Part shown: piece by piece, positions 5,260 to 53,141 of the stretch
How positions within the stretch are numbered: position 1 is the first letter of the stretch
Layout of the letters: the number at the start of each line of letters is the position of its first letter
Assembly: GCA_030704615.1 (NCBI GenBank)
Contig: CM060731.1
Span: 93,496,001-93,560,000 of the forward strand
Direction of reading: 5' to 3'
DNA length: 64,000 bases
Source of the DNA: Takakia lepidozioides
Taxonomy: Eukaryota; Plantae; Bryophyta
Made by a program: the position numbers and the translations under genes
The notes under the pieces: generated by a model
What the model saw: the letters and a program-made list of their open reading frames with translations, nothing else
Told to the model about the DNA's origin: nothing
The model's database searches: none

Positions 5260-6215
5260 CATAAGCCAATAACCCATGTCAGGCAATTTAGATCCATTGC
5301 TTGACCCAACACCCAACGGCGTGATGCCTCTGACAGAGCTGGCACAGTTGTAGTGCCCGTGGAAAACCCCATTGCCCGCTCTCGCTCATCCGCACTAGGC
5401 TCCACCAGTTGCTGTAGCGCATTGTCCCAAATCAACCCTGGACCATTGTCTCGAAAAGCATGAGACGAGGGAAAACTTATGAGTGTAGGCAAGGCCGCAT
5501 GTGGTTGCCCCACTCGATTGACCACCGCCAAAGATGGACGGTCATCATGTCGCACTCTCTGTGGTTGCCTCCCTTGGTCCAAAATGTCATCAACCATGAA
5601 GGGGTGGCCGTTGAATGGAATCATAGGCTCTCTTGAGCAACTCTGGTGGTACAAGATTGGTCCACCATAACCTAGGCCTACGTGCCCGTGACCCCACTGC
5701 ACCTGCATCCAATAATACAGCTGGTCCAATCCATGAACGACCTGATGCACACTAGCCATAACCCTGGCTCGAGAATCCCCCATAAGAGGAACATTCTCCA
5801 AGATATAGGCTACATGTTGCACTTGCCTCGTCTGCACGTCACGCAACACTCGCAATATCTCCCAAAACAAATACGATCGTGCATCATGCAAGCCATTCCC
5901 ATAACCTGCGGGAGAGTGTCCTTGGCAAGGCCATCCGGTTATCACCAAGTCAATGGGACCATGCCGGTCCAAATCATCCGCCCCCAGCAAGGTAATGTCT
6001 GCTGGCAAGGCCTTTTGATACCCTTGAATTGCTGATAGAGGCAACAACTCAGGATACCGGTGTGTGAGCAAGGCGATGTGGCGCATAGAAATACGCCGAG
6101 CAATCTCATCCTTCTCCACATACAAGTACTTGCGTACTTTAATCCCTGCTTGCAATACTCCTGCAAGCCCAGTGCTCATGCCTCCAAACAGGTCTAGCAA
6201 ATAAATCCCTAAGTC
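5260..6215 (-). pseudogene. DNMT3-like C5 cytosine methyltransferase domain of copy 1
   Basis: Motifs LLDLFGGMSTG (I), ITGWPCQGHS (IV), YILENV (VI), ERERAMGF (IX) and RRWVLGQAM (X). A stretch around motif VIII is out of frame relative to copy 2. Confidence 0.9.
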
Positions 6216-17707: not shown

Positions 17708-19520
17708 TGTCATGGTTTTAGTTATGGTTAATTAAAATTACCTATTTTTAGTTAACTTTGGTTATTTATATTTATATTTTGTGTGTTGGGATTTCATTTG
17801 GTCTCATATGTCAAGTGAGGTGTCAAGCCTCACTTGGGACATGAGGATGGGTTTTACCCTTGTGAGGGTTGAGGAGGGCTCTATCTTCTTGTAGTTGAGC
17901 TTCCATGAGCCTCTCTCACCTCCATAGCTCTAGGTATTGAGAGGGAGTGTGTTGAGGGCTTTGGGTGGATTTCTTTAGCAAAGGTGCCCTTGGCTTAATT
18001 TAATTTATGTGATATAGTGGATTTCACTTGGAAGGACTAGGGCTTGTTTTTAGTGTGATTGCCTCATGCTTAGAGAGTTTTCATTGTCTTCCACTTCCCT
18101 CATTTCTCATCTCTTATCACTACAAGAAGATCTCCTTATGCTTGTGAGTGCGGAGTGTAAGGATTAGTTTTGCACTTATATGTTAAGGAGGTAGAGGCTA
18201 GGAGAATTTAGCTCTTTCACAAGGGGTTGCAAGGAAAGATGCTTGGGTGTTGCATGCACCAAGGAGTTGGAGAGCTAGAGAAGAAAACTCTTGAGTCACA
18301 AGATTTTGCAAAGATTGCAAGGAGGAAGTCTTGTGTGTGTGGAAGCATGGATTCTAGGGTTTGAGAATCATTTTTATGCATTATGGAGTCAATGGTGTAT
18401 GCCATGGCATGTGGAGAATGACTAAATGGTTGTTAGTGCTCATTTCACTAGCAATCTAGGGTTAAGCAAGCTCAAGTGTGGATGTTGTGGAAGAGAAGCT
18501 AAGGAGCTACATAGGCTTGGGCTTTAAGACAACAAGGGCATGCACTTGGAGAGCATTAGGAAGCTCAAGAGGTTAGAAGGGCGGCATGTGGAGGAATCTT
18601 CCAATCATGGTGGTGTGGAGCCAAGCTTAGGGCATTGGAAGAGCTTAGAGAACTAATTGTGGGAGGTTCTTGAAATGAGATCATCATTCAAAGTTTTCAT
18701 AGCTCCACCCTAACTATGTAATGTGCCAAGATGGGGAGGCAATGCCCGGCTATTCATGCTCCTAGTAGTGTGAGGTTTGTGGTGGATTGCTCTTGGTGAA
18801 GCAAATGGTTGACAAGCAAGTGGTGCATGTGCGGAACATGCTTCCCAAGTGTGGCTTCCAACTTCAAGCTTGAGGAGAGCTAGAACGTGAAGGAAACAAG
18901 TTGATTCCCGTGTGTATAAGGTGATGCATATGTGGAACATGCTTTTGGCTTGAGCTTTGCAATTTCAAGCTTGAGCGGAGTGGCTCTTGAACTAGCAAGA
19001 GGTGAAGGCCTTAAGATCCATTTGTGTGTGAAGTGGAGAGGTGTTGATTCATGTTATAATGAAGGAGAATAACACATAGGCCGAGAGGTCATGGAATATG
19101 CATTCAAATGACCAAGGGGAGCACATGGATGATGAATGAGAGCAAGATCCCAAATGAGGCATATGACGTGAGAGTGGGATCCAAGGCGGATTGCTTGGGA
19201 TCATTATTGTAAGTGTCAAGCATTGCTCCTACACATTGAGATAATTTGTATCGATTTGGAGCAATTGTCAAATGATGATGAGACAAATGCATGATTGTTC
19301 GACAATGGAGATATGATAGTTTGCAATCAAATCCCAAGGACTAGAAGGGGGATTGATTTGGTGGCCAATGCATACTAGTTGAGTTGGAGACACTTGTAGC
19401 TTGAGGTGAAGAAGGTCAAGGAAATTTGCCTTGGTATCCCATAGAATTCATGGATGTTTGAGAGGATTAAGCATAGAGCTCAAGGAGCACAAACCCTAGC
19501 TTGGTAAGGCTAAACCTCAA
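17708..19520 (+). mobile_element. 5' fragment of the same Gypsy family (copy 3): A1 repeat 17708-18119 plus leader
   Basis: Starts with TGTCATGG and matches the A2 of copy 1. A ends in TTATCA, as in copy 2. The leader ends AAACCCTAGCTTGG..GCTAAACC, like 34940-34966. Confidence 0.85.
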
Positions 19521-29640: not shown

Positions 29641-29647
29641 GCCTTGG

Positions 29648-30830
29648 ATGCTGTGGGGATGGGCTATAAGATTTTCATGCATGTCCATGTGATAAAACCC
29701 TGTACTACGGAGAGGATGCGAAACTCACCAAGTGTCCAAAGTGCAACAAAGACCGATATCGGGATGATGTTCAAGGGAAGAAAGCCCCGCGCAAGGTATA
29801 CCCGCGCCACAATACACTTGTATATTGCATTCTACCTTTTTGCAACCGCTACAAGACGTAAGGTTTTACTTAGAGATATGAATGACACTGATTATGATAT
29901 GGGGCCGACATGGGGATGGTGCCAGAAAATGCACTACTTTCCAATCATCCCGCGACTGCAGGCACACTACCGAAGCCCCTCATTGGCAGAACTGATGAGA
30001 TGGCACGCCTCGCATCGGACCCCCCCAGGAAAGGTGTGCGGGCCACAATATTCACAAGCATGGAGGCATACTGAAGAGATGTGGCATTTTATCTTGGAGG
30101 ACCCACGACATGTCCGCCTCAGCTTCTCCTCGGATGGGGTCAACCCATTCTCTGTCCAGTCATGTAGTCATTCCACTTGGCTGGTGACCATGGTGAATTA
30201 CAACATCCCTCCGTATCTTTCAATAAAAAAATGTCATATCATGTTGGCTGCCATTGTACCGGGTGAGTGTTTCCATTTCATGCTTAGTATTACTTTGGAT
30301 TTTACATTAATCTTCTTCTCTTTGGCGCCGATGGAAGATTGATGAGTGACGTAATCATGTAGTAAGATGTGTCATTCATTATGAAGTATAATTAGCATGG
30401 TGGAGCATTGAAACAATTAATGGTGTGAATGTCTCATAGGGAAAAAACAAGTGAAAAACATGGACACGTACTTGCGACCTCTAGTTGATGAAGTGAAGGA
30501 GTTATGGAGGGGGGTCCCGACATTGGATGCTTCACTTGACCCTATGGCCGGACAATCTTTCAAATGAGAGGCATCTTGCTTTGGACAATGCATGATTATC
30601 CAGGTATATTATGTTCCCCATGAGAAACCCGCGTACATTTACCTGTCAAGGGATATTGAAGAGGATTGGGATTGATTGAAGTAGCAGCGACAGTCTTCTG
30701 CACCGTAGTGGGATAGATGCACATGGAAACTTTTTGTCTTTCCTAATGTGGCGGAATGTCTACAGGACTTACTGTTTGCTCGGGGTTGAGCACTAAAGGG
30801 TACCACGCATGCCTGCATTGTGGCGATAGT
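29648..30830 (+). pseudogene. CACTA (Tnp2/Transposase_21) transposase fragment with introns
   Basis: HACPCDKTLY..CPKC; HYFPIIPRLQ; VRLSFSSDGVNPF; STW...NYNIPP; MDTYLRPLVDEVKELW; LLWTMHDYPG; GYHACLHC. Confidence 0.9.
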
Positions 30831-32720: not shown

Positions 32721-33148
32721 CATTCCTTGCTACCAACATATATTATCATCATCTCACCTCCATAGGGCTCCAACCCTATTTCCCTCCCAGCCTTAGTTTA
32801 GTCTACGATCGACTCGACTTGGCTTTTGTCTCTCCCTCAAACGGTTGTAACTCCTCTTCATTAGAGGCGATAACTCTATATTTTAGGCCAAACGCCTCTG
32901 ATATTCTGTGGTTGTAGATAGGCCTAGGTAAATGGCTCTCAGTTACTGTTCTTAGTCATCCGGCACGGTCTCTGTGCGATCAGCCTCATGGTGGCCTTGT
33001 GGCACTCTAAGGGTTTTAATTTTTTTCCCTTCAATAATTCCAAATAAAGCTTCCAGGGCCATACCCCTGTTTATATATATATATATCATCATAATACTCT
33101 TATAGGTAGTCACCATATAAGGAGGAGCCATTACGCGACGAGCCGCTT

Positions 33149-33475
33149 TGTCAAGTTATTTTACCACTAGTGTGAAACTAGCTAGGAAATAGCTAGCTTT
33201 TACATATTGACATTTGGGATTGGCCCAAGTGTCAATCCAGGGGTCAAGGCAGATTTAGGCCCTGGAGTGGTTATCTTCACAGCAAGCGTGGGAGGCTCAT
33301 CTTTCTCGAGTTGAGCCTCACCGCGCCTAGCTATGGCGCCGTAGTGTGTATTCCCCATGGCGTGGGGTGCACTTGGCTTGACTTGTATTTGAGTGATGAG
33401 GTTATATATGCATGAGTTTATGCTTCAGCTTTGTGAGCTCGCATGAGCTTGTGCTTGTATTCTTCCTCTTTATCA
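33149..33475 (+). repeat. Repeat A1 (327 bp)
   Basis: Matches 44428-44754, with two substitutions seen by eye. Confidence 0.97.
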
Positions 33476-33519
33476 CTCGAGAAAGATCAGCTCGTATCTG
33501 TGAGTGCCAGATACGAGTT
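33475..33519 (+). promoter_or_regulatory. Putative self-priming site plus a conserved hairpin at the PBS position
   Basis: ACTCGAGAAAGAT (33475-33487) is complementary to 33299-33311. Stem 33491-33500/33508-33517. Confidence 0.7.
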
Positions 33520-35004
33520 AGTTGTAGCACTTGTGGTTTTTGCTTGAGAATGAGAGAAACCAAGTTGTTATGCAAGGAGCACCGTGGAGCTCTTAGTTGT
33601 TAGAAGCGGAGGCGAGGTGGGTTACGAGGTGGTAGACCTTGGCATTCGATCTTCAGCTTCAGAGATGAAAGCACCATGCTGCAGGTAATTCCAGAGCACC
33701 TTGATGGTTCCAGATTGTGTACATGCATGCGCAAGCACGATTGGGAAGAGGACCAGTCAAGAGCAGGTTATAGTGGCTTTGGTGGCAAAGCTGAGAACTG
33801 GACTTGGGAATGCGAGCTTTCATTGTGTGAAGGATTGCAAGACCAAGCGAAAGGGCTGATTTTGCTTGGGGCAAATCAGTGCACTTTGTGGAGTATGGTG
33901 AGATTGGGTTTCAATCTCGAGCTTCAGCATTGAGAGGGCTCTTGTCATGGCAAGAGCAGGGCTGGAACAGGAGCTAAGAGGTGCGGCAAGGCCATGGAAT
34001 GTGCACCTAGGGTTTCAGAGCTTGGAAGAAGAGTTCTTGCACCACAAGAGAAGTGTCTTGTGGCTGGAAATGTAAGCCTTAGGGTTTCAGGAGCTTGGCA
34101 AAGGCTATGGAGTGCTTAGTCTTGTCATAGAGAGCATCAAGGAGCCAAGATAGGGGGCTGATATCTCTTGTGTGAAGAGGTTGCATGTGTGGAGCATGTA
34201 TTCAGCTCATTGAAGCTTCCATCTTCAAGCTTGGAGGGCAAGCAAGGAAGAGGGAAGGGCTGACTTCCCTTATGTGAGGGCAATGTATGTGTGGAGCATG
34301 CTATCAGCCTGGTGAAGGCTTGCACTTTTAGGTGTGGGAGTGCAAGAAAGGAAGGAAGGGGCTGGTTTCCCTGTAGGGCATGTAGAGCATGCTTTCAGCC
34401 TGCTGAAGCTTGTATTATCAGGTTTGTGGGTGCAAGAAATGAAGCAAAGGAGCTGATTCTCTTATGGTGAGAGTGGGGCATGTGTGGAGCATGCCTTCAG
34501 CCCATTGAGGCTCTTGTTTTCAAGCCTTAGAGAGCTAGAACGGAAGGTCTAGGGCTGGTTTCCACTTGGAGTGAAAGAAAAGCACTTGTAGGGCCTATGT
34601 GAGTTGGGGTTTCAACTTCAAGCTTGAAGGGAGCGCAACTCTTGAAGCAACAGGTGTAGAGGGCTGGAATAGGCTCTAAGACAGATGCTATGGCCAATGA
34701 GGGGAGTGCTTGAATGAGTGCTCACAAGGGCTGGGAACCAGCAGGGCTTGGTTGTTTGCCATTGAGTTTAGTGGCGTGTTTGGGGAGGCTAAGTGAGAAA
34801 GAAGGCTTGGTTTGTGGCAACCACCTCATGGCTTAGGGCTACTATGGTGGTGTGTGGGAGCCGAAAGAGCAAGATACCTTGCTGATTTCCTCACAGCCAC
34901 CATAGCTCGGTGGAAAAGAAGCCTAGAGTCCAAGAGACAAAACCCTAGCTTGGCGTAGCTAAACCCCTTGGAGAAATGGCTAAACTGCCAGAGCGGCCAT
35001 GTGT

Positions 35005-36410
35005 GGGGCTGTGTCAGGCTGTGGCAAGCTGTGACGGGCTGTGACGGGCTGTGTCAGGCTGTGGCGAGCTGTGAAGGGCTGTGACGGCTGTGGCAAGCTG
35101 TGACTGTGCCCTGTGGGGGGCTGTGACGGGCTGTGTCAGGCTGTGACAGGCTGTGCCCAGTGGCCTTTTGGGGCTGTGCGGGCTGTGCGGGCTGTGACAG
35201 GCTGTGCCTGAGGCTGTGGGGCTGTGACGGGCTGTGACAGGCTGTGCCATGGCCTTTGGGGCTGTGATGGGCTGTGAGGGGCCTGTGACAGGCCGTGCCT
35301 GAGGCCTTTGAGGCTGTGATGGGCTGTGATGGGCTGTGACAGGCTGGGGCTGTGCCTGTGCCCTGTGGGGCTGTGACGGGCTGTGTCAGGCTGTGAGGCT
35401 GTGCCAGTGGCCTTTGGGGCTGTGACGGGCCTGTGCGGGGCTGTGACAGGCTGTGCCCTGAGGCCTGTGGGGCTGTGACGGGCTGTGACAGGGCTGTGCC
35501 CATGGCCTTGGGGCTGTGATGGGCTGTGATGGGCTGTGAGGGGCTGTGACAGGCCGTGCCTGAGGCCTTTGAGGCTGTGATGGGCTGTGAGGGGCTGTGA
35601 CGGGCTGTGAGGGGCTGTGACAGGCCGTGCCCATGGCCTTTGGGGCTGTGACGGGCTGTGAGGGGCTGTGACAGGCCCTGTGCCTGAGGGGGGGCTGTGA
35701 TGGGCTGTGAGGCCGTGCCTGAGGCCTTTGGGGCTGTGATGGGCTGTGAGGGGTTGTGACAGGCCCTGCCTGAGGCCTTTGGGGCTGTGACGGGCTGTGA
35801 GGGGCTGTGACAGGCCGTGCCTGAGGCCTTTGAGGCTGTGACGGGCTGTGAGGGGCTGTGACAGGCCGTGCCCATGGCCTTTGGGGCTGTGATGGGCTGT
35901 GAGGGGCTGTGACAGGCCGCGCCTGAGGCCTTTGGGGCTGTGACGGGCTGTGAGGGGCTGTGACAGGCCGTGCCTGAGGCCTTTGGGGCTGTGATGGGCT
36001 GTGACAGGCCGTGCCTGAGGCCTTTGAGGCTGTGACGGGCTGTGAGGGGCTGTGACAGTCCGTGCCTGAGGCCTTTGAGGCTGTGACGGGCTGTGACGGG
36101 CTGTGACAGGCCGTGCCTGAGGCCTTTGAGGCTGTGACGGGCTGTGAGGGGCTGTGACAGGCCGTGCCCATGGCCTTTGGGGCTGTGACGGGCTGTGAGG
36201 GGCTGTGACAGGCCGTGCCCATGGCCTTTGGGGCTGTGACGGGCTGTGACGGGCTGTGACAGGCCGTGCCTGAGGCCTTTGGGGCTGTGACGGGCTGTGA
36301 GGGGCTGTGACAGGCTGTGCCTGAGGCCTTTGGGGCTGTGACGAGCTGTGAGGGGCTGTGACAGGCTGTGCCCAGTGGCCTGTGGGACTGTGACGGCTGT
36401 GACCAGTGAG
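35005..36410 (+). repeat. GGCTGTGA-based minisatellite (10-bp subunits, about 51-bp higher-order unit) in the element leader
   Basis: The unit GGGCTGTGACGGGCTGTGAGGGGCTGTGACAGGCCGTGCCTGAGGCCTTTG repeats over about 1.4 kb. Confidence 0.97.
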
Positions 36411-36692
36411 CTGTGTGGGCCTGTGCTGGTCTGTGGTGGCCCGTGTTGACCTGTGGATGGCCTGTGCTGACTCGTGGAGGCACTGGTGGACTAAGGACTG
36501 GCATGTGGTCTGGAAGGCCGAATTTTGAAGCTCGTGGAGGGCGGTTTGAGGAGTATCTTCATGATATTCCCATGGTCATGCAAGTTCAGGTGTAGGCTAT
36601 GTTAGGAACTTAGTATTCCAAACCATAAGCCGCAACAGGTTCTCTACCCGGTTACCTTGTGGAGAGGGGGTTAGGGACATGTTCATGACCGG

Positions 36693-39600
36693 TTGAGTGT
36701 CAACACGGAGGTGCCACTAGTTGCTGGGGACAGTGCCGGTTCGAGCACTAGCGATACTAGTGGGTACACGAGACGAGGTGTGCGGTTTAGGCCACCTTCA
36801 CCTCCTGTGTCTTCCACGGAAGGTTCTGATTCGGATTGTGAATCAGGAGGGCTCATACCGGCGGTGCAAGTTGTTTCTTTGCCATTATTGTGGGACACAA
36901 TGGAGGAGATGTATGGAGCTACCAAGGGGCCACGAAGGTACTCTGGGGCGGTGGGCACCATTGAGTTGGATGATTTTATCCAAGAGTTTGATAGTTGGTG
37001 TGATTTGCAGCAAATGCGCAATCCACAACTATTTACGCCGTTCATGGCATGGAAAGGGCTGTTTCAGCACCTTGAGGGGCCGCCTATGGATGATTACCAT
37101 GAGTTCAGGCGGGGGCATGAGGTTGAGATCGAGGAGTGGAGGATGTACTGGTCACCCGACTATGTCTCCATCACTAGGGGCACTAGAGCCACGAGGGCAG
37201 TGGCTACACCTGCCGCTGCACCGGCAGCTTCAGCAAGTAGCAGTGGGACTGGTGGTACAGTAGCTACGACGTCCACCCAAGCCACTACCGCACCAGCACT
37301 AGCACCCGTGCCTGCCTTCAACCCTGTTGTGGAGTTCTTCGAAGAGTTGAGAGGGAACTACCAAGGGGTGAGGACAGAGAAGTTGCGGAGCTTGCAAGAG
37401 TTCCAACGGAAGCCGACCGAGAGCTTGAGGGAGGCTTTCACTCGCATGAGGCGCTTGATAAATGTAACCCAAGGGGTTACGGAAGCTCAGGCAGTCCAAT
37501 TCTGGTATGGGATATTGGACAAGGAGCTGAGGAGAAGGGTGCGGGATGCAACTCTCCTACAAGCGGCCCAACCCACCTTAGCAAATGTGTTTTTGCTGGC
37601 AGAGCGGATAGAGCTCAACATGGTGGAGGAACGAGTGGTCATGGTGGGATTTGCTAAGGAGACACCACGGGGTAGTGGTGCTCCTAGCCAACCACTACCT
37701 CAACGTGCTCAAGGCAACAAGGGGGCTCAGGTGAAGCTCAGGGAAGGGCAGAGAGGACCTCAGATGCAGGGGTCTCTCCCTTCATTTGCTGGCCAACAAC
37801 GGGCGGATGTGGTGTGCTGGACATGTGGAGGACCCCATGTCAAGAAGGATTGCCCAGAGGGAGGCAAAGGGCCGGCACATGCACAGCCTGCACAGTTGCA
37901 GTGTGGGCATTGTGGCAAGCACGGGCATGGAGAGGCCCAGTGTTATGGTTTGCATCCTGAGTTGCGCCCAGGCCAGTTCCAAGGGAACAATGGTGGCCGG
38001 GGGCGAGGTGGAGCAGCCCAGAGAGGACGAGGTGGCCAGCCACGAGGTGCAGGCCAAGGGCAAGCTCAACGTGGCCAAGGACGCGGAGGTCAGGGTGTTG
38101 ACCAAGGCATGGCCAACCGGCTTCAGCAGCTAGAGCAGAGGCTCGCTGCCATGGCTACAGCTCAGGTGGTACCGGCTCTAAGGCCGGATGGTCCACCTCC
38201 TGCTCCTGAGGGAGGAGATATGGGAGGCATGGGATTCATGTGTGGAGCAGCACTACCACTAGTGCAGGTGGAGTCTGCTGCAGCCGTGACTCGAGGAGCA
38301 GCACGAGTTCCTGAGCCACGAGGTGCAGAGGTGGAGTTGGATCCACAGCGTGGGGAGGCAAGCCGTCAGGCTAGGCTTCCTCAGTCATTCACATTGGCGG
38401 AGACAGTGTCGACGCCATCCATGGCACCTAGTTCTCGCCCGACTGTTACCGAGGCGGAGGTTACTATGCCATTGGGGAGAGCTACACGGGTAGCACCACT
38501 ACCTAGTGTTGCCAAGGCTACGGCAGCTAGTGTGCTGCTAGGAGCGGCCACATCTGTGTGCCAGGCTCCATTGTTCTCGGCTACCATGATTGCGACGCCG
38601 GGGGTAAGACCAGCTGAGGTGTTCAGGCTGGCAGCTACACTCTGTGAGAGTGGGGAGGTTACTTCATCTTCTGCGGAGATAGTGGGAGGTGTAGTGCCGG
38701 AGGGATCCTCGGATTTGAGGGTCAAGACTGCCACGGCGGCGCCATGGCAAGCTGCAGCTGCCAGGTTGATGGAGCTGCCAGCTAGGCCAGCCATTGAGCG
38801 CGCCATGGTGACACCTGGAGTTGTCATGTTAGACAACCAGGATGGCATTTTCTGTTTGAGTGGACCGGCAGGCAAGAGGTACCGGCCACTGCGAGTCTTG
38901 TTGGACTCGGGAGCTCAGCCACTGATGCTGGGCAGAGCTGCTATTGCAGGCTTGGGCCTCACGGAGGCGGATATGGAGCCTTGTCCTTTCCAGATACAGA
39001 CGTCTCTGGGAGGATCGGAGCAGGCTCGGGGCATGACACGGCATGAGTTGGCTATCAGACTACGGCCGGATCACCCTACAGATGGCTCAGTGATGCGAGC
39101 CAAGGCCATTGTGACAGACGCAGTCTCATACGATGTCCTGGTTGGTGGGGCAGTGTTGTACCCCATGGGCTTCACCCTGGATTTTTGGGAGGAGTCAGCT
39201 TCCTATAGGCCTGCATGGCAGTCAGGGGAGGGCCGGCGTGTGCAGCTCCCTGTGACGTTCATAGGAGGAGTTGCGGTTGCCCAGCGAGGCAAGATGCCGA
39301 CACTAGCAGCATTCACAGCGGCAGTGAGTTGGCCTAGAGAGTTGCTTGAGGGCAATGCTCATTCAGAGGATGTACCACCTCCGGGAGAGCAGGATGACAT
39401 GTATGGTATGGCGGAGTTGCCTACCATGGTTGCTCAGACTCCATTGTGGGGCACGAGCAAGGATTTGCAGCGGGATGCTGATCGACGGGTGCAACAAGCC
39501 TGGGTGGAGGCTTTTGTACCGTCAGGAGAGGAGGAGAGTGTGGGGATTGCACCAGGACCACCTCAATTGTCTCCATTGGACACCACACCTATTGTGTGGC

Positions 39601-40843
39601 AGTCTCCGGATGAAGGCATTTGTCTTCTGGACTTGTTTGGCGGGATCAGCACCGGATTGGCTGCTGTGTTACAGGCAGGTGTACGAGTTCGGCGTTACCT
39701 GTATGTGGAGAGGGATGAGACTGCACGACGCGTTTCACTTCGCCATGTTGCTCAGTTGGTGCAGCGGTACCCTGAGTTGTTGTCGGTGTCTGCAATTCGT
39801 GGATATCAGCAGGCCTTGCCAGCAGACATTTCGTTGCTGGGGGCGCAGGATTTGGAGCGGGTTGGCTCCATTGATCTGGTAGTGGCAGGTTGGCCCTGCC
39901 AAGGGCATTCATCAGCCGGGCATGGCAATGGATTGCGAGACTCGAGGTCGGGTCTGTTTTGGGAGATGGTGCGGGTTTTGCGCCACTTGCAGCTTCATCA
40001 AGCTGTATCTCCAGCATACATCTTGGAGAATGTGCCACTGATGGGCGATTCTCGGGCCAGGGTGATGGCCAGTGTGCATCAAGTCCGGTCGTGGCTTGGG
40101 TCAGCAGTGTTGCTAGATGCAGCTACAGTGGGGTCACGGGCTCATCGTCCACGGCTATGGTGGACTAACATGATGCCACCCGCACTGCTCAAGCGTGCAT
40201 TTGATGGGGTGCAGCGGCCAGCACATCTCACAGTGGATAACATTCTGGACACAGGGAGGCAGTCTCAACGTGTGAGACACGATGACCGTTCGCCTTTGGC
40301 AGTGGTCAAGGTACCATTACACTGCTCAGCTTCCCAGGATCGCATGCTTTCCGGGATAGTGGACCTGGCCTCCTGTGGGATGCTCAGTTGCAGCAGTTAG
40401 TGGAGCCTAATGCTGACGAGCGTGAGCGGGCAATGGGTTTTACCACTGGTACCACGGCGGTGTCGTCTCTTTCTGAGGCATCACGTCGTCAAGTGTTGGG
40501 GCAAGCAATGGATCTCAATTGCTTGACCTGGATTATCAGCTTGGCTCTAGCTGAGCAACGCAGAGTGCGGAATACACTTCCCTCAATGGTCTCTCTGCCT
40601 ACCGAGACGGTACAGGCAGTGAGTGGGGGCGAGCATATGAGGACCACGGGGTGCATGCATCCATGGCACACGTGGGAGGTGCTCGAGGTTCAGAGGGAGT
40701 TGGCAGCCAAGGCGGCTGTGATGGATGAGGTTGGGGATTCTTCTCGAGTTGAGGAGGTCCTCAAGGATGAGATGATGGGGCAGGATGATGCCTTGTCATT
40801 GACTGAGCAGGTAGGGAGTACTGCTCAAGAGGTTGCAGCATAG
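36693..40843 (+). CDS. Gag-protease-C5 DNA methyltransferase polyprotein, with a frameshifting deletion at about 40310
   Basis: Capsid-like region; knuckles CWTCGGPHVKKDC and CGHCGKHGHGEAQC; protease VLLDSGA...YDVLVG; DNMT motifs at about 39618-40560. The first in-frame ATG is at 36900. Confidence 0.93.
39618..40560 (+). other. DNMT3-like cytosine-5 methyltransferase domain
   Basis: LLDLFGGISTG (I), YVERDE (II), VAGWPCQGHS (IV, catalytic Cys at 39897), YILENV (VI), RAHRPRLWWTN (VIII), ERERAMGF (IX), RRQVLGQAM (X). Confidence 0.95.
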
Positions 40844-43800
40844 CAACCACGGGACGCGTCCTCTACCTCTAAGCCCACTGGACTTAAGGTTGTAGTTACG
40901 GAGGACAATTGGGAGCCTGACATTGGACCCATTGTCACCGGAGGAGAGAGACGACGTATACGGCGGTTCCTGAGGGCTTACAGGAATTGCTTTGCCTTCA
41001 GTTTGAAGGACTTGGGAGCACTGAAGGGTCAAGAGATCCGTATTGAGTTGGCCACTGACACGCCAATCTTTCGGAGACCCTATAGATACAGTGACATGGA
41101 GAGGTCTTTGATTCAGATGAGGACTCAAGATCTCTGGGAGGCAGGTTTGGTGGAGCTCTCTGGTGGAGAGTATGCTTCAGCCACAGTGATGCCAGCCAAG
41201 AAGGATGTCTATGGCAATTGGACGGAGAGACGTATGTGCGGTGATTACCGGCCTGTAAATCGTCAGACCAAGTCCGATAAGTATGCCATGCCAACACCAG
41301 AGGAGATCTTTGATGCCATCGGGCATGCTAAGGCCTTTAGCACTTTGGATTTACGATCCGGATATCACCAGTTGCCAATCAAGGAGGCGGACAAGCAGAA
41401 GACGGCATTCTGGGGGATCAATGAGCACGGCAAGGATTGCCTATATCAGTGGCGGTTCTTACCATTTGGGCTTAAGAATGCTCCTGCAGAGTTTCAGAGA
41501 GTCATGGATAGGATTCTAGCAGGGGTGGACTTTGCTCGGTGCTACATAGATGACATCATCATCTTTAGTGTTACGATGGAGGAGCATGAGAGACACCTTC
41601 AGGTGGTATTGGAGCGCTTGAGAGCGCACGGATTGAAGTTGCATCCGGGGAAGTGCAAGTTTTTCCACAACCAGATTGAGTATCTGGGTCACATGATATA
41701 TCCTGGAGGATTGGGGGTACAGCAGACTAAGGTAGAGGCCATTGCACAAATTCCACGCCCCACGGATGTGAGCCGAGTTCGAGCTTTCATGGGGTTGGCA
41801 AACTATTATAGACGGTTTGTCAAGGGATTTAGTACCATTGCAAAGGCTCTAACCAAGCTGACCAAGGTGGACCAGGAGTGGCAGTGGGAAGATGAGCAGG
41901 AACGAGCTTTTCAAGAGCTCAAGGCGAGGTTGACCTCGGCGCCTATCTTGAGACGACCTATCAGGGGGCGTCCTTTCAGCTGCATACGGATTGGAGCATG
42001 CTGGGGCTTGGAGCGGTGCTCACACAGGTGGATGATGAGGGAAGAGAGTTCGTAGTGGCTTACGCTAGCCGCTCGAACAACGCTGCAGAGGCTAAGTACA
42101 GCTCATATGAGGGAGAGTGCTTAGCTGCAGTGTGGGCCGTGGCACACTTCAGGTGCTATCTATACGGCAATCTTTTCACCCTTGTCACGGATCACCAGCC
42201 ACTCAAGTGGTTGATGGAGTCAGACAAGCTTACGGGGAAGCTTGCACGGTGGGCACTTATACTCCAGGAGTATGACTTTCAGGTTGTGCATCGACCGGGT
42301 TTGGTCAATCGGGATGCGGATGGATTGAGTCGCAATCCATGCATGAGCCAGCAGGATGACACTGGAGCTCGGTGGCATGGTGAGACGGACGAGGAGATGG
42401 TGCCGGGATGGCACGCATCTGCATTTTTGTGTATCTTGGCATCGGGAGGTCAGATTGGACCTACAACAGGGATGACTGTAGACGGAGTGTCTGAGGACCC
42501 TGAGGCTAGTGATGAGCTAGGTGGTGCCAGAGATATACATGAGGATTCGGCTGTGTTGGACTACCTCCGCACGGGAGACACGGCAGCCATTGTGACTGCC
42601 AGGGAGAGGGATCGGATCCTGCAACGAGCCAAGAGGTTCAAGTGGGAGGGGATACACCTACTTCGAGTGTGGGAGGATGGTCGGGTGAGGATTGTGCCTC
42701 ACCCCACACAGCGTGCACGGTTAGTGCGGCATGCCCATGAGGAGTTGGGGCATTTTGGAGTGCGACGCACTCACAGTTTACTGCAGGGGCAGTATTGGTG
42801 GCGTGGTATGCATACAGAGGTGCAACAGTTTGTGGCTAGGTGCATGGTGTGTGACAGGGTGCGTGCTTCATTCAACGCCCCTACACCACAGTTGCATCCT
42901 TTACCTATCATGGGATTGGGCTACAGGTGGAGTCTTGACTTCGCAGGACCGTTGCCACTGACTATGCGCCACCACAGATATGTGTTGGTGATGGTGGAGC
43001 ACTTCTCCAAGTGGATTGAGTTGGTTCCATTGCCTGACAAGGCTAGTGAGGGGGCTGCGTATGCATTCTTGGATCGTGTGCTTAGCCGATTTGGTGCTCC
43101 AGCTGAGGTACTCACGGACCAAGGGAGAGAGTTCTTGGGGGAGTTTCAGGCTTTGTGTGATAAAGCCTTGATAGACCACCGCACCACTTCTCGGGATCAT
43201 CCTGAGGCCGATGGCTTAGCAGAGAGAGTTGTTCAGACGGTGAAGAGGGGTTTGCGCAAGTATGGCTTGCAGAAGGGACACCTAGGAGATTGGGATCTTC
43301 AGGTTCCTTGGTTAGCCATGGGCTACAGGTTCAGCAAACAAGCATCACTTGCCTCCTTCTCACCATATTTCCTTCTCTTTGGCCGAGAGCCGGATTTGCC
43401 TGCAGCCATTCGTAGGGACACTGCTCAAGTCCTTAACCTTGACGATCCGGACGTGTGGGTACGTGCATGTGATCAGCGTGCAGAGTTGTTCAAGAAAGTC
43501 ATGCCCATGGCTTTTGAGAACCTTGCCATTGCACAGCACCGTGATACGTTGAGGTATGCCACTATACGTGGTGGAGGATATCGTCCTGGGGTTCGGAGGT
43601 TTAGCCCTGGTGACTATGTTTATTTGCAGCAGACTGCTCCTACGACTCTGGATGTTACTGCAGGGCGTGTTATTCTGAGGGTTCGAGAGGTGTTGCCCTC
43701 AGGGGTCCTGATCTTGGAGGGTCGGGATGGCATGACTTGGAAGGACCATGTGCGTAATTGTGCGCCATGTCACCTTCCCAATGTCGATGGCAGAGTTGAC

Positions 43801-43977
43801 CCAAACTTGGCAGTGGTACCTGCAGGTTTGAGGTGCATGCTCTGTGGGTCTGCCAAAGGGGCAGCCACCATGCTGGTGTGTGATCGATGCTCAAGGGGTT
43901 GGCATATGGGATGCTTGACACCACCTCTTGAGAAGGTTCCTGACGGAGATTGGTTGTGTCCACACTGCTTGGGATAG
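40844..43977 (+). CDS. RT-RNase H-integrase-PHD, with a 1-bp frameshift at about 41978
   Basis: RMCGDYR, LDLRSGYHQ, LPFGLKNAP, YIDD; RNase H TDWS..YSSYEGECLA..TDH; HHCC, SLDFAG/TDQG/AER; PHD at 43834-43968. In frame with the upstream ORF across the TAG at 40841-40843. Confidence 0.95.
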
Positions 43978-44220
43978 TGGCAGTGGACATGACTGGAGGC
44001 AGCTAACAAGACATGGGAGGCCAAGCTCATAGGAGTCAATACATGAGATCCCAAGCTCAAGTTCACAGGTTGCAAGACGACGACTAACGATGGGGCAACT
44101 CTTGCACCCGGCCTCTTGATCTATCGAGTTTGAGTGTAGTAGGGATAGTGGTGGAGGACTTAGTGAGGCTATGGTCACTATCACATCTTGTGGCTACCTG
44201 GACTTAGAGGGACCTAAGCA

Positions 44221-44236
44221 CCAGCTAGGGGGGCGA
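44221..44236 (+). promoter_or_regulatory. Polypurine-tract-like motif
   Basis: CCAGCTAGGGGGGCGA lies directly before B1 and is conserved in copy 1 (1539-1554, minus). Confidence 0.7.
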
Positions 44237-44943
44237 TTGTGTGGACTAGTGATTGCCATAGTGGGCAGCGTAGTGGCAGCCTAGTGACTGACTAGTTGTA
44301 GCCTAGTGGTTGGACTAGTGGCTGGACTAGTGGTAGACTAGTGGTATACTAGTGTGTGGTGTGCACATGTGTTGTGTGGTTTTGGACAGCGATGTAGTTG
44401 TGTAGCGATATGTATGCGCACGACAGCTGTCAAGTTATTTTACCACTAGTGTGAAACTAGCTAGGAAATAGCTAGCTTTTACATATTGACATTTGGGATT
44501 GGCCCAAGTGTCAATCCAGGGGTCAAGGCAGATTTAGGCCCTGGAGTGGTTATCTTCACGGCAAGCGTGGGAGGCTCATCTTTCTCGAGTTGAGCCTCAC
44601 CGCGCCTAGCTATGGCGCCGTAGTGTGGATTCCCCATGGCGTGGGGTGCACTTGGCTTGACTTGTATTTGAGTGATGAGGTTATATATGCATGAGTTTAT
44701 GCTTCAGCTTTGTGAGCTCGCATGAGCTTGTGCTTGTATTCTTCCTCTTTATCATTGTGTGGACTAGTGATTGCCATAGTGGGCAGCGTAGTGGCAGCCT
44801 AGTGACTGACTAGTTGTAGCCTAGTGGTTGGACTAGTGGCTGGACTAGTGGTAGACTAGTGGTATACTAGTGTGTGGTGTGCACATGTGTTGTGTGGTTT
44901 TGGACAGCGATGTAGTTGTGTAGCGATATGTATGCGCACGACA
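44237..44943 (+). repeat. B1-GC-A2-B2 terminal block
   Basis: B1 (44237-44425) and B2 (44755-44943) are both 189 bp and look identical; both contain internal CTAGTGG repeats. Confidence 0.97.
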
Positions 44944-45849
44944 GCTTGTTTATGTCAATTTACTTGCATCAAATCTCTCTCAATCAAACAAGCATGTCCC
45001 AAAAGTTAAAACGTTACCTTGACAGATCTGAGCCAATGATTATGAATAATATGATTTTGAATAATTGGATTGTGGAAACAACCTTTGAAGAAACCAATTT
45101 CATTATTGTTATCAGTCTCATATTTAACTTGGTCTAATCGCACTAGAGTTGGTTGGGAGTTTCTACTTTGCCTGTGCATAATTTAGATGATCTAGGGTTC
45201 GAAATGTCCACCTTTCAACGGAAGGCCATAGGCCCTCGGGATGAAGAGACATCATAAATATTCAAGCTTCCGGCTTTGGGAGGCATCATCATTTTTTTTT
45301 AAATTTGTTTTGGGCCCGATCCGATCAAATCTCACTTTGTCCTTTGTTTTCTCGACCTTGCAAAGATGTGGCAATGCCAAAGGGATCATGATCGGCATTG
45401 AGAGTTAGATATCCTTCATTTAGGATGAAAAGCTATATTTGAGTATGGCTACATGTCATGCTATAGTAGATTTTGAAAATGATATATAGATGACGCCAAC
45501 TGGAGGGGAACCGGAGTTAACGTAAATAAGAATCTATTTCCCCTTTCGGGGGTGGGCCTTATGAAATGGGTCGTATCTACGAGGTGATAAGTTGGCCACT
45601 CTCAATCTTGCGTTTGTCGAGGACATTGAGAGCTATAAGTTCTCTGATAGCCATAAAATGTAGGGTGCAAAGGAGTTTAGTGATGGCGGTACGGGATAGT
45701 AACTTTCAATTTTTGTTTCAAAATATTGATATTAATGTGGTTATGAGCGTCACTCCTAACACCTGCAATAATAATAGTCAATGAGACGATATGTCATCCA
45801 TGCTGGTGAAGGGTCAGCACCAAGGGTTCATATTTCTAACGATTATAAT

Positions 45850-47939: not shown

Positions 47940-50900
47940 GCATTATCTGACTACAGACACAAGCAGCACACAGAATGTGGAACCTTTGACCAATGGTACG
48001 TGAAGAGGTGACGCCCACCAAGGTCACGTTCGTTTCTGCTCTCAGCAGCGTGTGCCAGCATAGGTGCCCTGGAAAAGGGAAAACAGGTCCAAGCTGACAT
48101 TTTGAAAGCTGGAATTGCACCAGATATCATTCTAGAGGTTGCCCTTGCTGCCATCTATGCCAAGTGCGGGAGCATAAAGGAGGCCCGTCGAGTTTTCGTC
48201 AATATGGCTGGACGAGATGTGGTTTCATGGAGTGCGATGATTGCAGGATATGCTCAGCAAGGGTGTGGTCAGGAGGCCTTGGAGACCTATGAGCAAATGA
48301 TATGGGAAGGGTGGGTACCGAACAAAGTCACATTCACTTCCGTTCTCGATGCATGTGCCAGCCTAGCAGACCTGGAAAAGGCCAAAAAGATCCATGCTGA
48401 TATTATCAAAGCCAGAATTGAGCCACCCGACATCCTTGAGCGCGGAGGGGTTTCACGCAATATGGTGACGGTACCCTCTTCTTCGACCTATTTCAGCCTG
48501 TTTTTGCCTCTCATCAGACTAGGCCCTGAGATGCCTGTTATCAGAATCAGCCCTAAATTTTCATGTTGAATTCTGCAAGTTAGCTGGTTGACTAAACCTT
48601 TGATAGTTTGGAGTGACTGACATGATACTGCCAATGTGACAACAGGAAAGTATCCAGAAACAGGTAACAAAGACGAGAAGCTGTGGAATGAATACTTTTC
48701 TGACCCCTGTTAATGGTGGGACAATCGAGGCAAAAAAGGTAAATGCCTGTTGGATTACAGAGAGTAGCAGATGCAATTGAGCATAGGAACTAGTGTGATA
48801 AGTTGAGTTGGGTGTTTCCTAGAACAAATCTAGGCTGTCATTGTCAGCTGCTAGCAGCAAAGCAAGGATGTATGCATGATTTGTACATAGGCATGGATAG
48901 CTGAAGGAGCAGGGATAGAGTGTGGGTCCAGACTCATCCAACAGGGCCGGACTTCAAGCTCTAGATGACCTATGATTCCCTGTGGATCAATAGCTACAAG
49001 AAACCTGCATGGGGAAATGGTCAACTAACTAGCGCAACATAAAGAGTGCAGTCTTAACATTCAGTGACAATCTGCCATCACACCCCATCGATTCATCAGC
49101 TCCTGACAACGGGTGTTGCACATATATTACTATGCTCAAATTTATGGGCATATACCGTTACCACAACTTCTGAAAGAGGATCAAGAGAGGGAGTCCACAA
49201 TGCCTCTTCTGGCACTTCTGGGCATGTGAAGATGCTTTGTGAGGCAAGCAAACTGAAAGAGGCTCTACAAACTTTAAACCAAGGAGGAATTTCAGCAGAT
49301 TCAGATACGTATGTCTGTCTCTTGCATAAGTGCATCAAGATGAAAGGCCTTGAAGCTGGAAAGCAGGTGCACACGAGGGGTGAAGCCCATCCACAGCACG
49401 TTCGTTTGTGTTTGCGGACTCAGAATCAGATCCTTGAAAACCGCTTCTTCCGCCAGGACTTAACCTGTTTGACAGGGCAATCCTGCTTCCAAGATAGAGT
49501 CGATTAACTTAGGGTATGTGTTTTTAGTCCTACATTGCAGCTGACCCAACCATCTGACCTTGAATTCCTCTCGTCTAGAGTTATACATAGAGAGAGTATT
49601 CCTAGGACGTTGTTTGCCGTAGCCTTGTGGACATTGACTCCGCGCCCAGTTTAAACAATTGATCCGGGTTTTCCAGATATCCTCTAGAAATCCCTTTACA
49701 CAAGCATCAACCTGCTGTGTGTGGTTTGCCCAATAACTAGGCCCCAAAAGGGCCTGGGCGTTTGGCTCAGCCTCGAGACTTTCAAAGTTGCTAAACAGAG
49801 GTACAGGCGTATGAGCAAATGATGCGCGAAGGGGTGAAGCCCAACCACATCACGTTCGGTTGCATTTGCAGTGCGTATGCAAGCCTAGGAGCCCTAGAAA
49901 AGGGGAAAGAGGTCCATGATGACCTCGTCAAAGCTGGAATTGTACCAGATGTCATTCTCAACACTGCCTTGGTGGACATGTATGCCAAATGTGGGTGCAT
50001 TAAGGATGCAAAGGCAGTTTTCAACAATATGCAGGCTGAACGAGATGTGGTGTCGTGGAGCGCGATGCTTGCAGGGTATGCACAGCAGGGACGTGGGGTG
50101 GCGGCTTTGGAGACCTATGAACAAATGATGGGGGAAGGGGTGAAGCCCAACCACATCACGTTTGTGTGCGTTTGCAATGCGTGTGCAAAGCCTGGGAGCT
50201 CTGGAAAAGGGCAAAGAGGCCCACGGCGACATCGTCAGAGCTAGAATTGTACCCGATGTCATTCTGAACAATGCCCTCGCGGACATGTATGCCAAATGTG
50301 GGAGCATCGAGGATGCGAAGGCAGTGTTCAACAATATGGCTGAATGAAATGTGGTGTCATGGAACGCGATGCTTGCAGGGCATACACAGCAGGGGCGCGG
50401 GATGGAGGCTTTGGAGACGTGTGAGCAGATGATGGTGGAAGGGGTGAAGGCCGACCACATCACATCTATGCGTTTGCAAGCTTGGCAGCCCTGGAAAATG
50501 GCAAAGAGTGCATGGTTGTATCGCAAAAGCTGGAATTGTACCAGATGTGATTCTGAACGATATCCTCGTGGGCATGTATGCAAAATGTGGGTGCATTAAG
50601 GATGCAAAGGGAGTTTTCAACACTATTGCTGAACGAGATGTGGTGTCATTGAAGACGATGCTTGCAGGGTATCCACAACAGGGACGTGGTATGGGGGCTT
50701 TGGAGACCTTGATCAGATGATGGGGCAAGGGTGAAGCCCAACCACATCACGTTTCTATGCATTAGCAATGCGTGTGCAAGCCTGGCAGCTCTGGAAAAGG
50801 GCAAAGAGGTCCATGGCGACATGGTCAGAGCTGCAGTTGTACCAAATGTCATTATGAACAATACCCTCGTGGACATGTATGAAGGGAGTGTTTGACAATA

Positions 50901-51075
50901 TGGTTGAATGAGATGTGGTGTCGTGGAGTGCGATGATTGCAGGATATGCACAGCAAGGGCACGGGATGGAGGCTTTGGAGACCTATGAGCAAATGATGTG
51001 CAAAGGGGGTGAAGCCCAACTACATGACGTTTGTTTGCATTTGCAATGCGTGTGCAAGCCTGGCAGCCCTGGAAA
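47940..51075 (+). pseudogene. PLS-class PPR repeat pseudogene segments
   Basis: Repeated ALVDMYAKCGCIKDA..VF..M..RDVVSW.AM.AGYAQQG.G..ALE.YEQM..EGVKPNHITF, with stops and frameshifts. Confidence 0.92.
48666..49028 (+). pseudogene. OSB-type PDF ssDNA-binding motif split by an intron, upstream of a PPR N-terminus
   Basis: KLWNEYFSDPC*WWDNRGKK (48666-48738), a GT..AG intron, then THPTGPDFKL*MTYDSLWINSYKKPAW (from 48932). Confidence 0.7.
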
Positions 51076-51081
51076 AGCCCT

Positions 51082-53140
51082 ATTCCAGAGCTGCTAGGCT
51101 TGCACACGCACTGCAAAACACACAAACGTGATGTGGTCGGGCCTCACCCCTTTGCACATCATTTGCTCATAGGTCTCCAAAGCCTCCATCCCGCGCCTCT
51201 GCTGTGCATACCTTGCAAGCCTCGCGTTGGGCAATGTTCAGAATGACATTTGGTACAATTCCAGATTTGACGATGTCACCATGGGCCTCTTTCCCCTTTT
51301 CCAGGGCTGCCAGGCTTGCACACGCACTGCAAATGCAAACAAATGTGCCTTTAGTTGACCATCTACCCATGCAGGTTTCTTGTAGCTATTGATCCACATG
51401 GAATCATAGGTAATCTGGAGCTTGAAGTCCGGTCCCCTTGGATGAATCTGGACCCACATTCTATCCCTGCTCCTTCAACTATCCATGCCTCTGCACAAAT
51501 CATGCATACATCCTTGCCTTGCTGCTAGCAGCTGACAATGACAGCCTGTGACAGGCTCAATAAACTTTGGAATAGAGCTCCAAAGCCTCCATCCCGCGCC
51601 CCTGCTGTGCATACCCCTGCAAGCATTGCAATAATTTCTCGTGCAACAATTTTGGATATCAACTTGGTGCCAGTGTGGCAGTCCCCACATATACATAGGT
51701 TTTTAATGATGCGGATAGGGGTCCTAGGGGGTGTGCTAATGAGCCCAAAAGCTATGGCCAGCTTTTCGCTGTGGTGGTAAAGAGCCCGTTCCTTCATCTG
51801 CTGATCCACATCACGCAACACAAAGCGTGTCTCAGGCACATATCCCGCCTCCTTAATCTGCCAAGTCAATCTCTCTAACGCATCATAGATCTCCTCTGCT
51901 TGTGGGTGAGATCTATCTCCAATGGCAAATGTATCCATCTTGTGATTCCACCTTGAAAATACATTCTGCAGCACACTCTGCTAACTCCACATTTCCATAG
52001 ATTCTGCGGGCACCAAGCAAGGCCCCCCACACTGAAGCACTTGGTTTGAGTGCCATGTTGGCAATAAAATATTCTTCATCCAAGCGCCCTGCATGGCCAA
52101 GGAGGTCAACCATGCAGGTGCAGTGCTTTTCTGTTGGTGTAATGCCATGCTATTGACACATGGATTGAAAATAATGACCACCTTCATCTACAAGGCCCAA
52201 ATGGCTGCATGCAGAGAGAACACCAATAAATGTGACCTCATTTGGCTTCACACTAGTTTAAACAGTTGGAGAGCCTCGTGACCACGCCCATGCTGAGCGT
52301 ATCCTATAATCATCGTAGTCCATGAGACCACATCTGGTTTAAGAATTTTGTCAAACACCTCCCGTGCATCCTCTACACTCCCACATTTGGTATACAAATC
52401 AATGAGGGCATTCCTGACGTAGCATCTGACTCACACACAGATTTGATAATGTAGGCATGGACCCACTTGCCCTGTTCCAGGGATGCTTCACACCCTCTCT
52501 TTGCATTTGTCGAAAGAGTTTGAAAGCCTCCTCACCATGACCACTATGTGCACATCCTCCAATCATCGCAGTCCATGAGACCACATCTCGCTTAGGCATT
52601 CTGACAAACACATTGAGTGCATCCATCACACTCCTGCACTTGCAATACATACTGACAAGGGCATTCCTGAGTCCAACATCTGACTCAAATTCAGCTTTGA
52701 TGATGCTGGCAAGGAGCTGCTTGCCCCGTTCTAAAGCCTCCGGGCCAGCACAAGCGTTGAGGACAATAATAAAAGAGACAATATCTGCCTTCATGCCTTC
52801 TCTTTGCATGCGCTGAAAGAGTTAAAAAGACCATGACCATGCTGAGCAGATCCTGCAATCATAGCAGTCCACGAGAGCCCATTTCGCTTGGGCATTGCAC
52901 GTCAAATACTCGGGTGGCATCCATCAAACTCTCACACCTGCAATACATGCTGACAAGGGCAGTCCCCACAGGGACATCCCCCTCAAGTCCAGCCTCAATG
53001 CACGCACCACATCACGTTCAGCAATACTGTCAAACACTCCATTTGCATCCTCGATGCACCCACATTTGACATACATGTCCACCAGGGCAGTGTTCACAAT
53101 GACATCGGGTACAATTCCAGATTTGATAATGTCACCATGG
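51082..53140 (-). pseudogene. Inverted PPR-E-DYW segment with the DYW domain truncated
   Basis: MVDLLGHAGRLDE, VWGALLGA, FAIGDRSHPQ, GYVPET, HHSEKLAIAFGL...KNLCICGDCH...KIVAREII. The terminal DYW segment is missing after about 51630. Confidence 0.92.
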
Positions 53141-53141
53141 T

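Follow-up and report, generated by a model that had tools for sequence, protein, structure and literature searches.

A probable self-priming signal flush with a split direct repeat in a Ty3/gypsy retrotransposon of Takakia lepidozioides

We analyse here a stretch of 64,000 nucleotides from Takakia lepidozioides (assembly GCA_030704615.1, contig CM060731.1, positions 93,496,001 to 93,560,000 of the forward strand), which is called the window below and in which positions are counted from its first letter. At 33149-44943 lies an 11.8-kb Ty3/gypsy retrotransposon, called copy 2, with this assignment being made because its domains stand in the order reverse transcriptase (RT), RNase H (RH) and integrase (IN); two related copies, copy 1 and copy 3, lie further to the left. 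A preliminary description of the window, made from its letters alone, had pointed to a short site just past the 5' repeat of copy 2 that is complementary to a stretch inside that repeat, and had offered two readings of it, either self-priming as in Tf1 or a loop pseudoknot or switch in a transcript that starts further upstream. As argued below, it is likely that the site at 33475-33487 is the primer binding site (PBS) of the minus strand and that the transcript's own 5' end primes DNA synthesis there, as in Tf1. The features of the 5' part of copy 2 are as follows.

33145-33148, forward strand: left 4-bp target-site duplication GCTT, found again at 44944-44947, just past the repeat module B2.
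33149-33474, forward strand: A1, the 5' repeat (the long terminal repeat, LTR, of the preliminary description), starting with TGTCAAG and ending with TTATC.
33271-33277, forward strand: degenerate TATA-like motif TTATCTT, 28 nt upstream of P and weak in copy 2.
33292-33299 and 33312-33319, forward strand: stem GAGGCTCA / TGAGCCTC of a hairpin that encloses P, extended to 33287-33325.
33299-33311, forward strand: P, the inner partner ATCTTTCTCGAGT, exact reverse complement of 33475-33487 and putative self-primer at the 5' end of the transcript.
33309-33317, forward strand: AGTTGAGCC, which spans the putative RNase H cleavage site and can pair with GGCTTGACT at 33375-33383.
33312-33474, forward strand: putative R-U5 segment, strongly structured, between the two partners.
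33475-33487, forward strand: candidate PBS ACTCGAGAAAGAT, which complements P of the same element rather than the 3' end of a tRNA.

In the whole window ACTCGAGAAAGAT has three occurrences, the one on the forward strand at 33475-33487 and its reverse complement at 33299-33311 and 44578-44590, the latter two being equivalent sites of the two repeat copies. In shuffled sequence 0.06 matches are expected per window, and three matches were seen in none of 100 shuffles. The site directly adjoins A1 (boundary 33474/33475), where the A at 33475 can be counted as the final base of the repeat or as the initial base of the PBS, with the junction past the 3' copy favouring the PBS. The bases past A1 are ACTCGAGAAAGATCAGC, with no TGG, and a tRNA-type (TGG...) primer site is likewise absent next to the 5' repeat in every family examined. 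The preliminary description had given the two partners, their coordinates and the lack of a TGG-type site exactly as we find them. A search of 33000-34200 against Rfam gave no family up to E = 1. Note also that in nearly all families P ends with AGT, which is followed by a conserved TGAGCC or TGAACC.

The pairing can be compared within the window itself, where copy 3 carries the 5' end of a second family and copy 1 the 3' part of a related element.

17708-18118, forward strand: A1 of copy 3, with P at 17883-17895.
18119-18131, forward strand: PBS ACTACAAGAAGAT of copy 3, exact complement of 17883-17895.
1098-6395, reverse strand: copy 1, with the methylase-RT-IN-PHD region, the polypurine tract (PPT), B1, the palindrome and a truncated A2.
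1550-1540, 1459-1444, 1448-1098 and 1266-1254, reverse strand: PPT, palindrome, truncated A2 and P of copy 1, respectively.

Between the families of copy 2 and copy 3, 4 of the 13 positions differ in each arm and all four differences are compensated, so that the 13/13 pairing is kept; it was correctly described before that both partners have changed together in copy 3. The complement of ACTACAAGAAGAT also occurs at 1254-1266, in the truncated 3' repeat of copy 1, and the repeat of copy 3 is 88% identical to that of copy 1, for which the pol region shows about 79% identity. Copy 3 (17708-18131 and onward) has a full 5' repeat, the primer site and a leader. No pol similarity was found to the right of its 5' end, and it therefore adds a 5' end only; it may be truncated, interrupted or non-autonomous.

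The pairing was then followed through 91 fetched loci (given below by L numbers), 80 of which are metagenomic and were obtained by similarity of the RH-IN protein and 11 of which come from genomes and were obtained via exact proteins, the metagenomes with relatives being moss- or liverwort-associated. An unfiltered scan of all loci for inverted pairs is too noisy, and scans anchored on the pol match and the repeat ends were used instead. The Volvox locus L085 and the Closterium locus L084 are nested or repetitive and uninformative, the Marchantia locus L088 is too decayed, and three Klebsormidium loci lie at contig ends, so that their 5' ends and primer sites are unreadable. In all recognisable 5' repeats, the bases right past the repeat complement a stretch 110-225 nt upstream within the same repeat, and the pairing is upheld through differing sequences in at least seven families from several host species, among them the following.

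Calypogeia fissa, L002: AGTTCTCTAAGT / ACTTAGAGAACT, 12 nt.
Marchantia polymorpha, L089: CAGTTCTTCGAGT / ACTCGAAGAACTG, 13 nt.
Marchantia polymorpha, L090: 12 nt.
L016 and L026: 17 nt exact, or 22 nt with one G.U.
L051: 22 nt with one mismatch; compared with L016, it contains a TG/CA change that is compensated.
L020: 16 nt.
L079 (RH-IN about 49% identical): 15-16 nt with one mismatch.

The PBS differs at up to 9 of 12 positions among families, yet it always matches the repeat of its own element. In an alignment of 14 elements, 93.8% of the cells of the 13-bp helix are paired, versus 34-50% after a shift of the partner by 1-3 columns, and double-sided changes are present in 9 of the 13 pairs, values that were reached by none of 500 shuffles. 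RNAalifold, given the same 14 elements, returns P:PBS unprompted as the closing helix, and the single-sequence folds agree with this. Thus the pairing that the preliminary description had noticed is kept in other copies, and the covariation that it had proposed to examine speaks for it in these 14 elements. Moreover, the PBS is specific to the 5' copy of the repeat, because in a census of repeat copies it follows every copy with host DNA on its left, and the copies preceded by the second repeat module B (see below) are followed by B, except at the fold-back locus L077/L078.

By analogy with Tf1, the following pathway can be proposed. Transcription would start at or within a few bases of 33299, under a TATA-type promoter about 28-30 nt upstream, and we infer that P is the very 5' end of the transcript, i.e., the start of R. 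The first 12-17 nt of the RNA, i.e., P ending with AGU, would fold over the structured R-U5 of about 160 nt and anneal to the PBS. The RNase H of the element would then cut past P, ahead of the conserved UGAGCC, the boundary AGT|TGAGCC being the likely cleavage site; the freed 3'-OH would be extended into minus-strand strong-stop DNA, and synthesis of the plus strand, beginning at the G-rich tract (44226-44235), would later copy the RNA primer that is still attached. Since in this way the PBS would be rewritten from P in each cycle, both partners would be expected always to change together.

The position of the transcript start is suggested by the relatives. The L016 group has a canonical TATAAAG 26 nt ahead of the first base of the 17-nt exact pairing, in L079 TATAAAAG lies 30 nt upstream of the start of the complementarity, TATAC lies 31 nt upstream of it in L002 and 30 nt in L090, and in L089 TATATT lies 28 nt upstream. 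With these distances of 26-31 nt, the start would fall on the first paired base, the arrangement by which Tf1 is defined. The self-priming option of the preliminary description is thus supported by the flush position of the site, the lack of a tRNA-type site, the pairing that is kept and the TATA boxes of the relatives.

Five points weigh against it. Firstly, the window copies carry only degenerate motifs (TTATCTT, TTTTACC) at the TATA position, and because of this the start at 33299 is taken over from the relatives. Secondly, an inverted repeat lies over P in most families, and it would sequester P if the start were further upstream. Thirdly, several copies of the L016 group retain a G.T mismatch in the distal part of their 22-nt pairing; this part is then not rewritten from the primer, and the length of the primer is therefore uncertain within 12-17 nt. 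Fourthly, many older copies have a decayed pairing of 7-11 nt, which is expected of dead copies and adds no support. Fifthly, neither the window nor any fetched locus yielded tRNA genes with which the site could be compared.

The first two of these points lead to the best surviving alternative, namely that transcription starts upstream of the hairpin and that P and the PBS form an RNA switch or pseudoknot for priming, packaging or dimerisation, or that P primes from within the RNA once a cut has set it free. A strong hairpin over P is seen in copy 2 (fold of 33285-33325: -24.2 kcal/mol, z = -5.1), L002, L016, L089 and L090, and AT-rich stretches are present about 100 nt upstream of P in the window copies, which have no good TATA at -30. 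However, no single hairpin structure is conserved: GAGGCTCA and TGAGCCTC enclose P as the loop in copy 2, whereas in L002, L016, L089 and L090 a PBS-like copy further upstream pairs with P, which there forms one arm. For copy 1 the fold drops to z = -2.1 and for copy 3 it is not significant (z = 0.2), and by folding no significant hairpin over P is present in copy 3 or in the distant L079 lineage. The hairpin that the preliminary description had noted in copies 2 and 1 is confirmed as strong in copy 2 and is weaker in copy 1. In addition, the TATA boxes of the relatives set the start at the first complementary base, which would leave the 5' arm untranscribed in the 5' copy, and no other primer site is visible. 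With its pairing partners varying and the hairpin lacking in copy 3 and L079, an upstream start with a loop-PBS pseudoknot or switch, the second option offered before, is unlikely. Under the self-priming reading, by contrast, the 5' arm of the hairpin lies between the TATA box and the start at P, so that the hairpin would be present in the RNA only at the 3' copy, where one may speculate that it keeps the P of that copy from competing for the PBS.

A second alternative, which we regard as improbable, is that the complementarity serves RNA circularisation, strand transfer or dimerisation and that some other host RNA is the true primer. It is consistent with the stability of the domain between the partners: the fold of 33299-33500, which the P:PBS helix closes, has -85.4 kcal/mol and z = -7.1, and such a long stable R-U5 domain is closed by the pairing with z = -7.1 and -4.3. 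It is also consistent with the second conserved potential helix, which spans the end of P: AGTTGAGCC and GGCTTGACT are among the best-conserved parts of the repeat, their pairing is present in the minimum-energy folds, and across families 94% of cells pair versus 12-55% with slid partners, with one-sided changes only. In every family, however, the PBS is flush with the end of the repeat, where the minus strand must start, it is present only past the 5' copy, and the repeat boundary, which marks the start of the minus-strand DNA, coincides with the first paired base. Moreover, at L077 (3361-3878; L078 is the same locus) the repeat and the PBS are followed by the reverse complement of bases 1-176 of the repeat, 94% identical and ending with ...CATGACA, and this fold-back turns exactly at P:PBS, i.e., at the repeat boundary. 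The fold-back looks like the integrated product of a snap-back, in which DNA with a copied P primer would have snapped back and been extended; it also speaks for the self-priming reading, since, although found at one locus only, it can hardly be accounted for unless a nucleic acid with the sequence of P was attached where the minus strand begins. Finally, that the PBS binds a host tRNA, tRNA half or fragment and matches the repeat incidentally is very improbable, since, although half-tRNA priming is known in some plant copia lineages (Neumann et al. 2019, PMC6317226) and no tRNA genes for comparison turned up, as said above, the site begins with TGG in no family, a 13-mer matches by chance at the above rate of 0.06 per window only, and a host tRNA would hold the site constant, whereas the site varies as described and tracks its own repeat.

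The repeat next to which the PBS lies is itself not a plain LTR. The element has the terminal layout A1...B1-A2-B2, so that the repeat A is one half of a split direct repeat, with the following features at the 3' end of copy 2.

44226-44235, forward strand: G-rich polypurine tract AGGGGGGCG, immediately ahead of B1.
44236-44425, forward strand: B1, first copy of the second repeat module.
44422-44431, forward strand: palindrome GACAGCTGTC at the B1/A2 junction, identical to the right end of the element plus 2 nt plus its left end.
44428-44753, forward strand: A2, the 3' copy of repeat A, with the second P at 44578-44590.
44754-44943, forward strand: B2, flush with the end of A2 and ending with GACA, followed by the right duplication GCTT at 44944-44947.

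The 327-bp repeat is 99.4% identical between 33149-33475 and 44428-44754, and B1 and B2 are 100% identical over 193 bp. The termini of the element are the A1 start (TGTC...) and the B2 end (...GACA), and its left end has A only, which is not the canonical LTR layout. The full layout A1...B1-A2-B2 is present in copy 2, L002, L005, L016, L079, L089 and L090, and in all seven of these complete elements matching 4-bp target duplications bracket the A1 start and the B2 end (GCTT in copy 2, GTCA in L002, TCTC in L005, AAGG in L016, ACCT in L079, GGTT in L089 and CCGG in L090). The 3' part B1-A2-B2 is found in addition in L001, L010, L014, L031, L053, L061, L074, L083, L086 and L087; Riccia and three Klebsormidium loci have the 3' end PPT-B-A-B. 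The PPT is CTAGGGGGGCG in the liverwort-type families and a shorter G run in L079 and the Klebsormidium locus L083, and it always abuts the start of B1. The same B1/A2 palindrome is present in Klebsormidium, Riccia, Calypogeia and Marchantia.

Because the PPT adjoins B1 and the PBS adjoins A, the ends of reverse transcription differ from the integrated ends. The ends expected of reverse transcription, i.e., the start of B and the end of A, are joined together in the integrated copy, while the integrated ends (TGTC...GACA) lie at a palindrome within what would be the LTR of the cDNA. The bases at the A2/B2 junction vary among copies (AG, AA, GAA, a 17-nt insert), as would fit ends that are joined, or a template that is switched, anew in every cycle.

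Two other explanations of B2, namely a plain LTR element whose long LTR would be B-A and nested or tandem insertions, are both rejected, for host DNA and not B precedes A1 in 19 of 19 5' copies and the target duplications bracket A1 and B2. A random cut of a two-LTR circle would predict left ends of the type B-A-PBS, and none of the 19 is of this type; a directional process is therefore favoured over such a cut.

We thus arrive at a wider proposal, namely that a Ty3/gypsy lineage with DDE integrase, ranging from Klebsormidium to liverworts, both self-primes and integrates in a circularly permuted form, to which as a whole we would give slightly less than an even chance. In this proposal the LTR of the cDNA would be B-A, with the PPT before B and the PBS after A, and the integrated copy would be A...B-A-B. 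The cDNA would be opened at the palindrome GACA-NN-TGTC inside the LTR, and the integrated copy would hold the joined cDNA ends (the A|B junction). This would require an LTR-LTR junction or circular intermediate that is cut by the integrase, or else a step of reverse transcription that extends the ends. It would mean a layout in common with the tyrosine-recombinase retroelements (Ngaro/PAT/DIRS), yet in an element that has an integrase and produces target duplications. Cutting of palindromic LTR-LTR junctions is known of retroviral integrases (PMC1180852, PMC1905944), and the proposed cut at the palindrome thus has a biochemical precedent. The split-repeat architecture is directly seen in the copies, and only the route to it is a matter of reasoning. 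In the literature searched, split direct repeats are described solely for tyrosine-recombinase retroelements, and it is uncertain that the architecture is undescribed for an element of the present kind.

It is noted that some insertions end right past B1, with matching duplications in L006 (TACA), L030 (TGTG), L041 (ATTA) and L051 (TACA) and with a duplication that matches at 3 of 4 positions in L047. In L041, A1 lies at about 2577 and B ends about 130 nt past the PPT at 12150. Lacking A2-B2, these five insertions are devoid of terminal repeats, and they may represent either a further product of integration or elements that suffered a deletion when B1 recombined with B2.

The internal part of copy 2 begins with a leader of 3.2 kb and continues with the coding region, in which the domains were assigned with Pfam.

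35000-36500, forward strand: G+C-rich array of 51-bp tandem repeats inside the leader.
36693-40400, forward strand: open reading frame with weak gag, weak aspartic protease and C5 cytosine DNA methylase.
41003-43977, forward strand: RT, RNase H, integrase (H2C2 and rve) and C-terminal PHD finger, in two overlapping frames.

The array consists of about 1.5 kb of 51-bp units with a G+C content of about 58% and is untranslated; the long minus-strand open reading frames over it are probably repeat artefacts. The gag signal at amino acids 214-269 of the first reading frame (PF03732) and the protease (PF13650) are both weak. The methylase domain, at about 39825-40154 between the protease and RT (PF00145, 1.4e-12), belongs to a region that is kept in most relatives, is annotated in many Marchantia polymorpha proteins and is present in copy 1 too (5517-6395, minus strand). 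The PHD finger (PF00628), at about 43834-43968, closes the integrase and is common to nearly all full-length relatives. By Pfam, no chromodomain was found in the proteins of copy 2 and no tyrosine recombinase in any of its open reading frames. To judge from its sequence, copy 2 is a young yet broken copy, broken because the coding region is spread over four frames (36693-40400, 40388-40843, 41003-42055 and 41998-43977) and young because its repeats are 99.4-100% identical.

The remainder of the window holds clustered PPR-repeat genes, with direct and inverted duplications inside the cluster, two fragments of CACTA-type (tnp2) transposase and a histidine phosphatase gene, a gene content that points to a land plant as host; the coordinates of this context are 47978-54620, 29644-30342, 58072-58683 and 13478-14233.

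Among LTR retroelements, self-priming is the less common way of initiating DNA synthesis; in plants it has been predicted for the Tcn1 and TAR lineages only, and that of Tcn1 has served as an argument for horizontal transfer from fungi. If a second, green-only gypsy lineage indeed self-primes, that argument would be weakened, unless the lineage belongs with Tf1/sushi/Tcn1. It would also be expected that annotation pipelines which seek tRNA sites mis-score these elements. In Marchantia polymorpha the lineage has many and young copies, the repeat pair of L089 (AP019869.1, 10,223,128-10,246,964, with the first base of P at position 6995 of the locus) being 99% identical, and the prediction can thus be directly tested there. 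The split repeats, if confirmed as a feature of replication, would bear on the kinship of integrase-based and recombinase-based retroelements and on LTR-LTR junctions as substrates of integration.

We now compare the element with known systems. Self-priming is established in Tf1 of Schizosaccharomyces pombe and is assumed for the Tf1/sushi group (PMC6317226, PMC5006619). As in Tf1, a tRNA-type site is missing, the putative transcript start inside the LTR finds its complement in some 11-13 nt directly past the 5' LTR, and the pairing closes a structured R-U5 domain. Unlike in Tf1, the repeats are split, so that the PBS abuts a half-repeat, and the complementarity extends over 12-17 nt and up to 22 nt; unlike the Tf1/sushi elements, the present one has a PHD finger instead of a chromodomain, plus a DNA methylase. 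It thus lacks the chromodomain that characterises the Tf1/sushi-Tcn1 clade, the comparison being one of features. The closest named proteins are those of liverworts (Riccia, Calypogeia, Marchantia), followed by Sphagnum, Klebsormidium, Closterium, Volvox and Haematococcus, with no fungal protein among the best 120 relatives. As to the literature searched, the mechanism itself is known, and no report of self-priming in this lineage was found.

In plants, self-priming has been predicted in 83% of Tcn1 elements and 89% of TAR copia elements (Neumann et al. 2019, PMC6317226), and according to the same work no other plant chromovirus group self-primes. Like Tcn1 of mosses and clubmosses, the present element is an LTR retrotransposon of non-seed plants with predicted self-priming; Tcn1, by contrast, is about 6.4 kb long, always has a chromodomain and has ordinary LTRs, whereas the present element has 11.8 kb, a PHD finger, a methylase and split repeats. 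The PHD finger in the polyprotein is shared with the Chlamyvir/PHD-finger gypsy elements of green algae (Gypsy-7a_cRei, REM1; PMC9940879), but Chlamyvir, compared here by its description, is recorded as tRNA-primed and as always having a chromodomain (PMC6317226), unlike the present element.

The C5 methyltransferase in a gypsy polyprotein is shared with KnitGypsy-Dnmt3 of the charophyte alga Klebsormidium nitens (de Mendoza et al. 2018, PMC5890265); by searches for these terms, the text of that paper speaks of neither priming nor split repeats. The Klebsormidium integrases are 45-56% identical to that of copy 2. Unlike KnitGypsy-Dnmt3, the methylase-bearing lineage seen here is abundant in liverworts, including Marchantia polymorpha, and by its proteins it extends the KnitGypsy-Dnmt3 type to land plants.

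In its layout, A1 - internal - B1-A2-B2, the element resembles Ngaro, PAT, VIPER and TOC1. These, however, have a tyrosine recombinase and no DDE integrase, whereas the present element has an rve integrase and 4-bp target duplications. Taken as a priming signal, what we describe would be a known mechanism in a further lineage, and the split-repeat layout is the more unusual feature.

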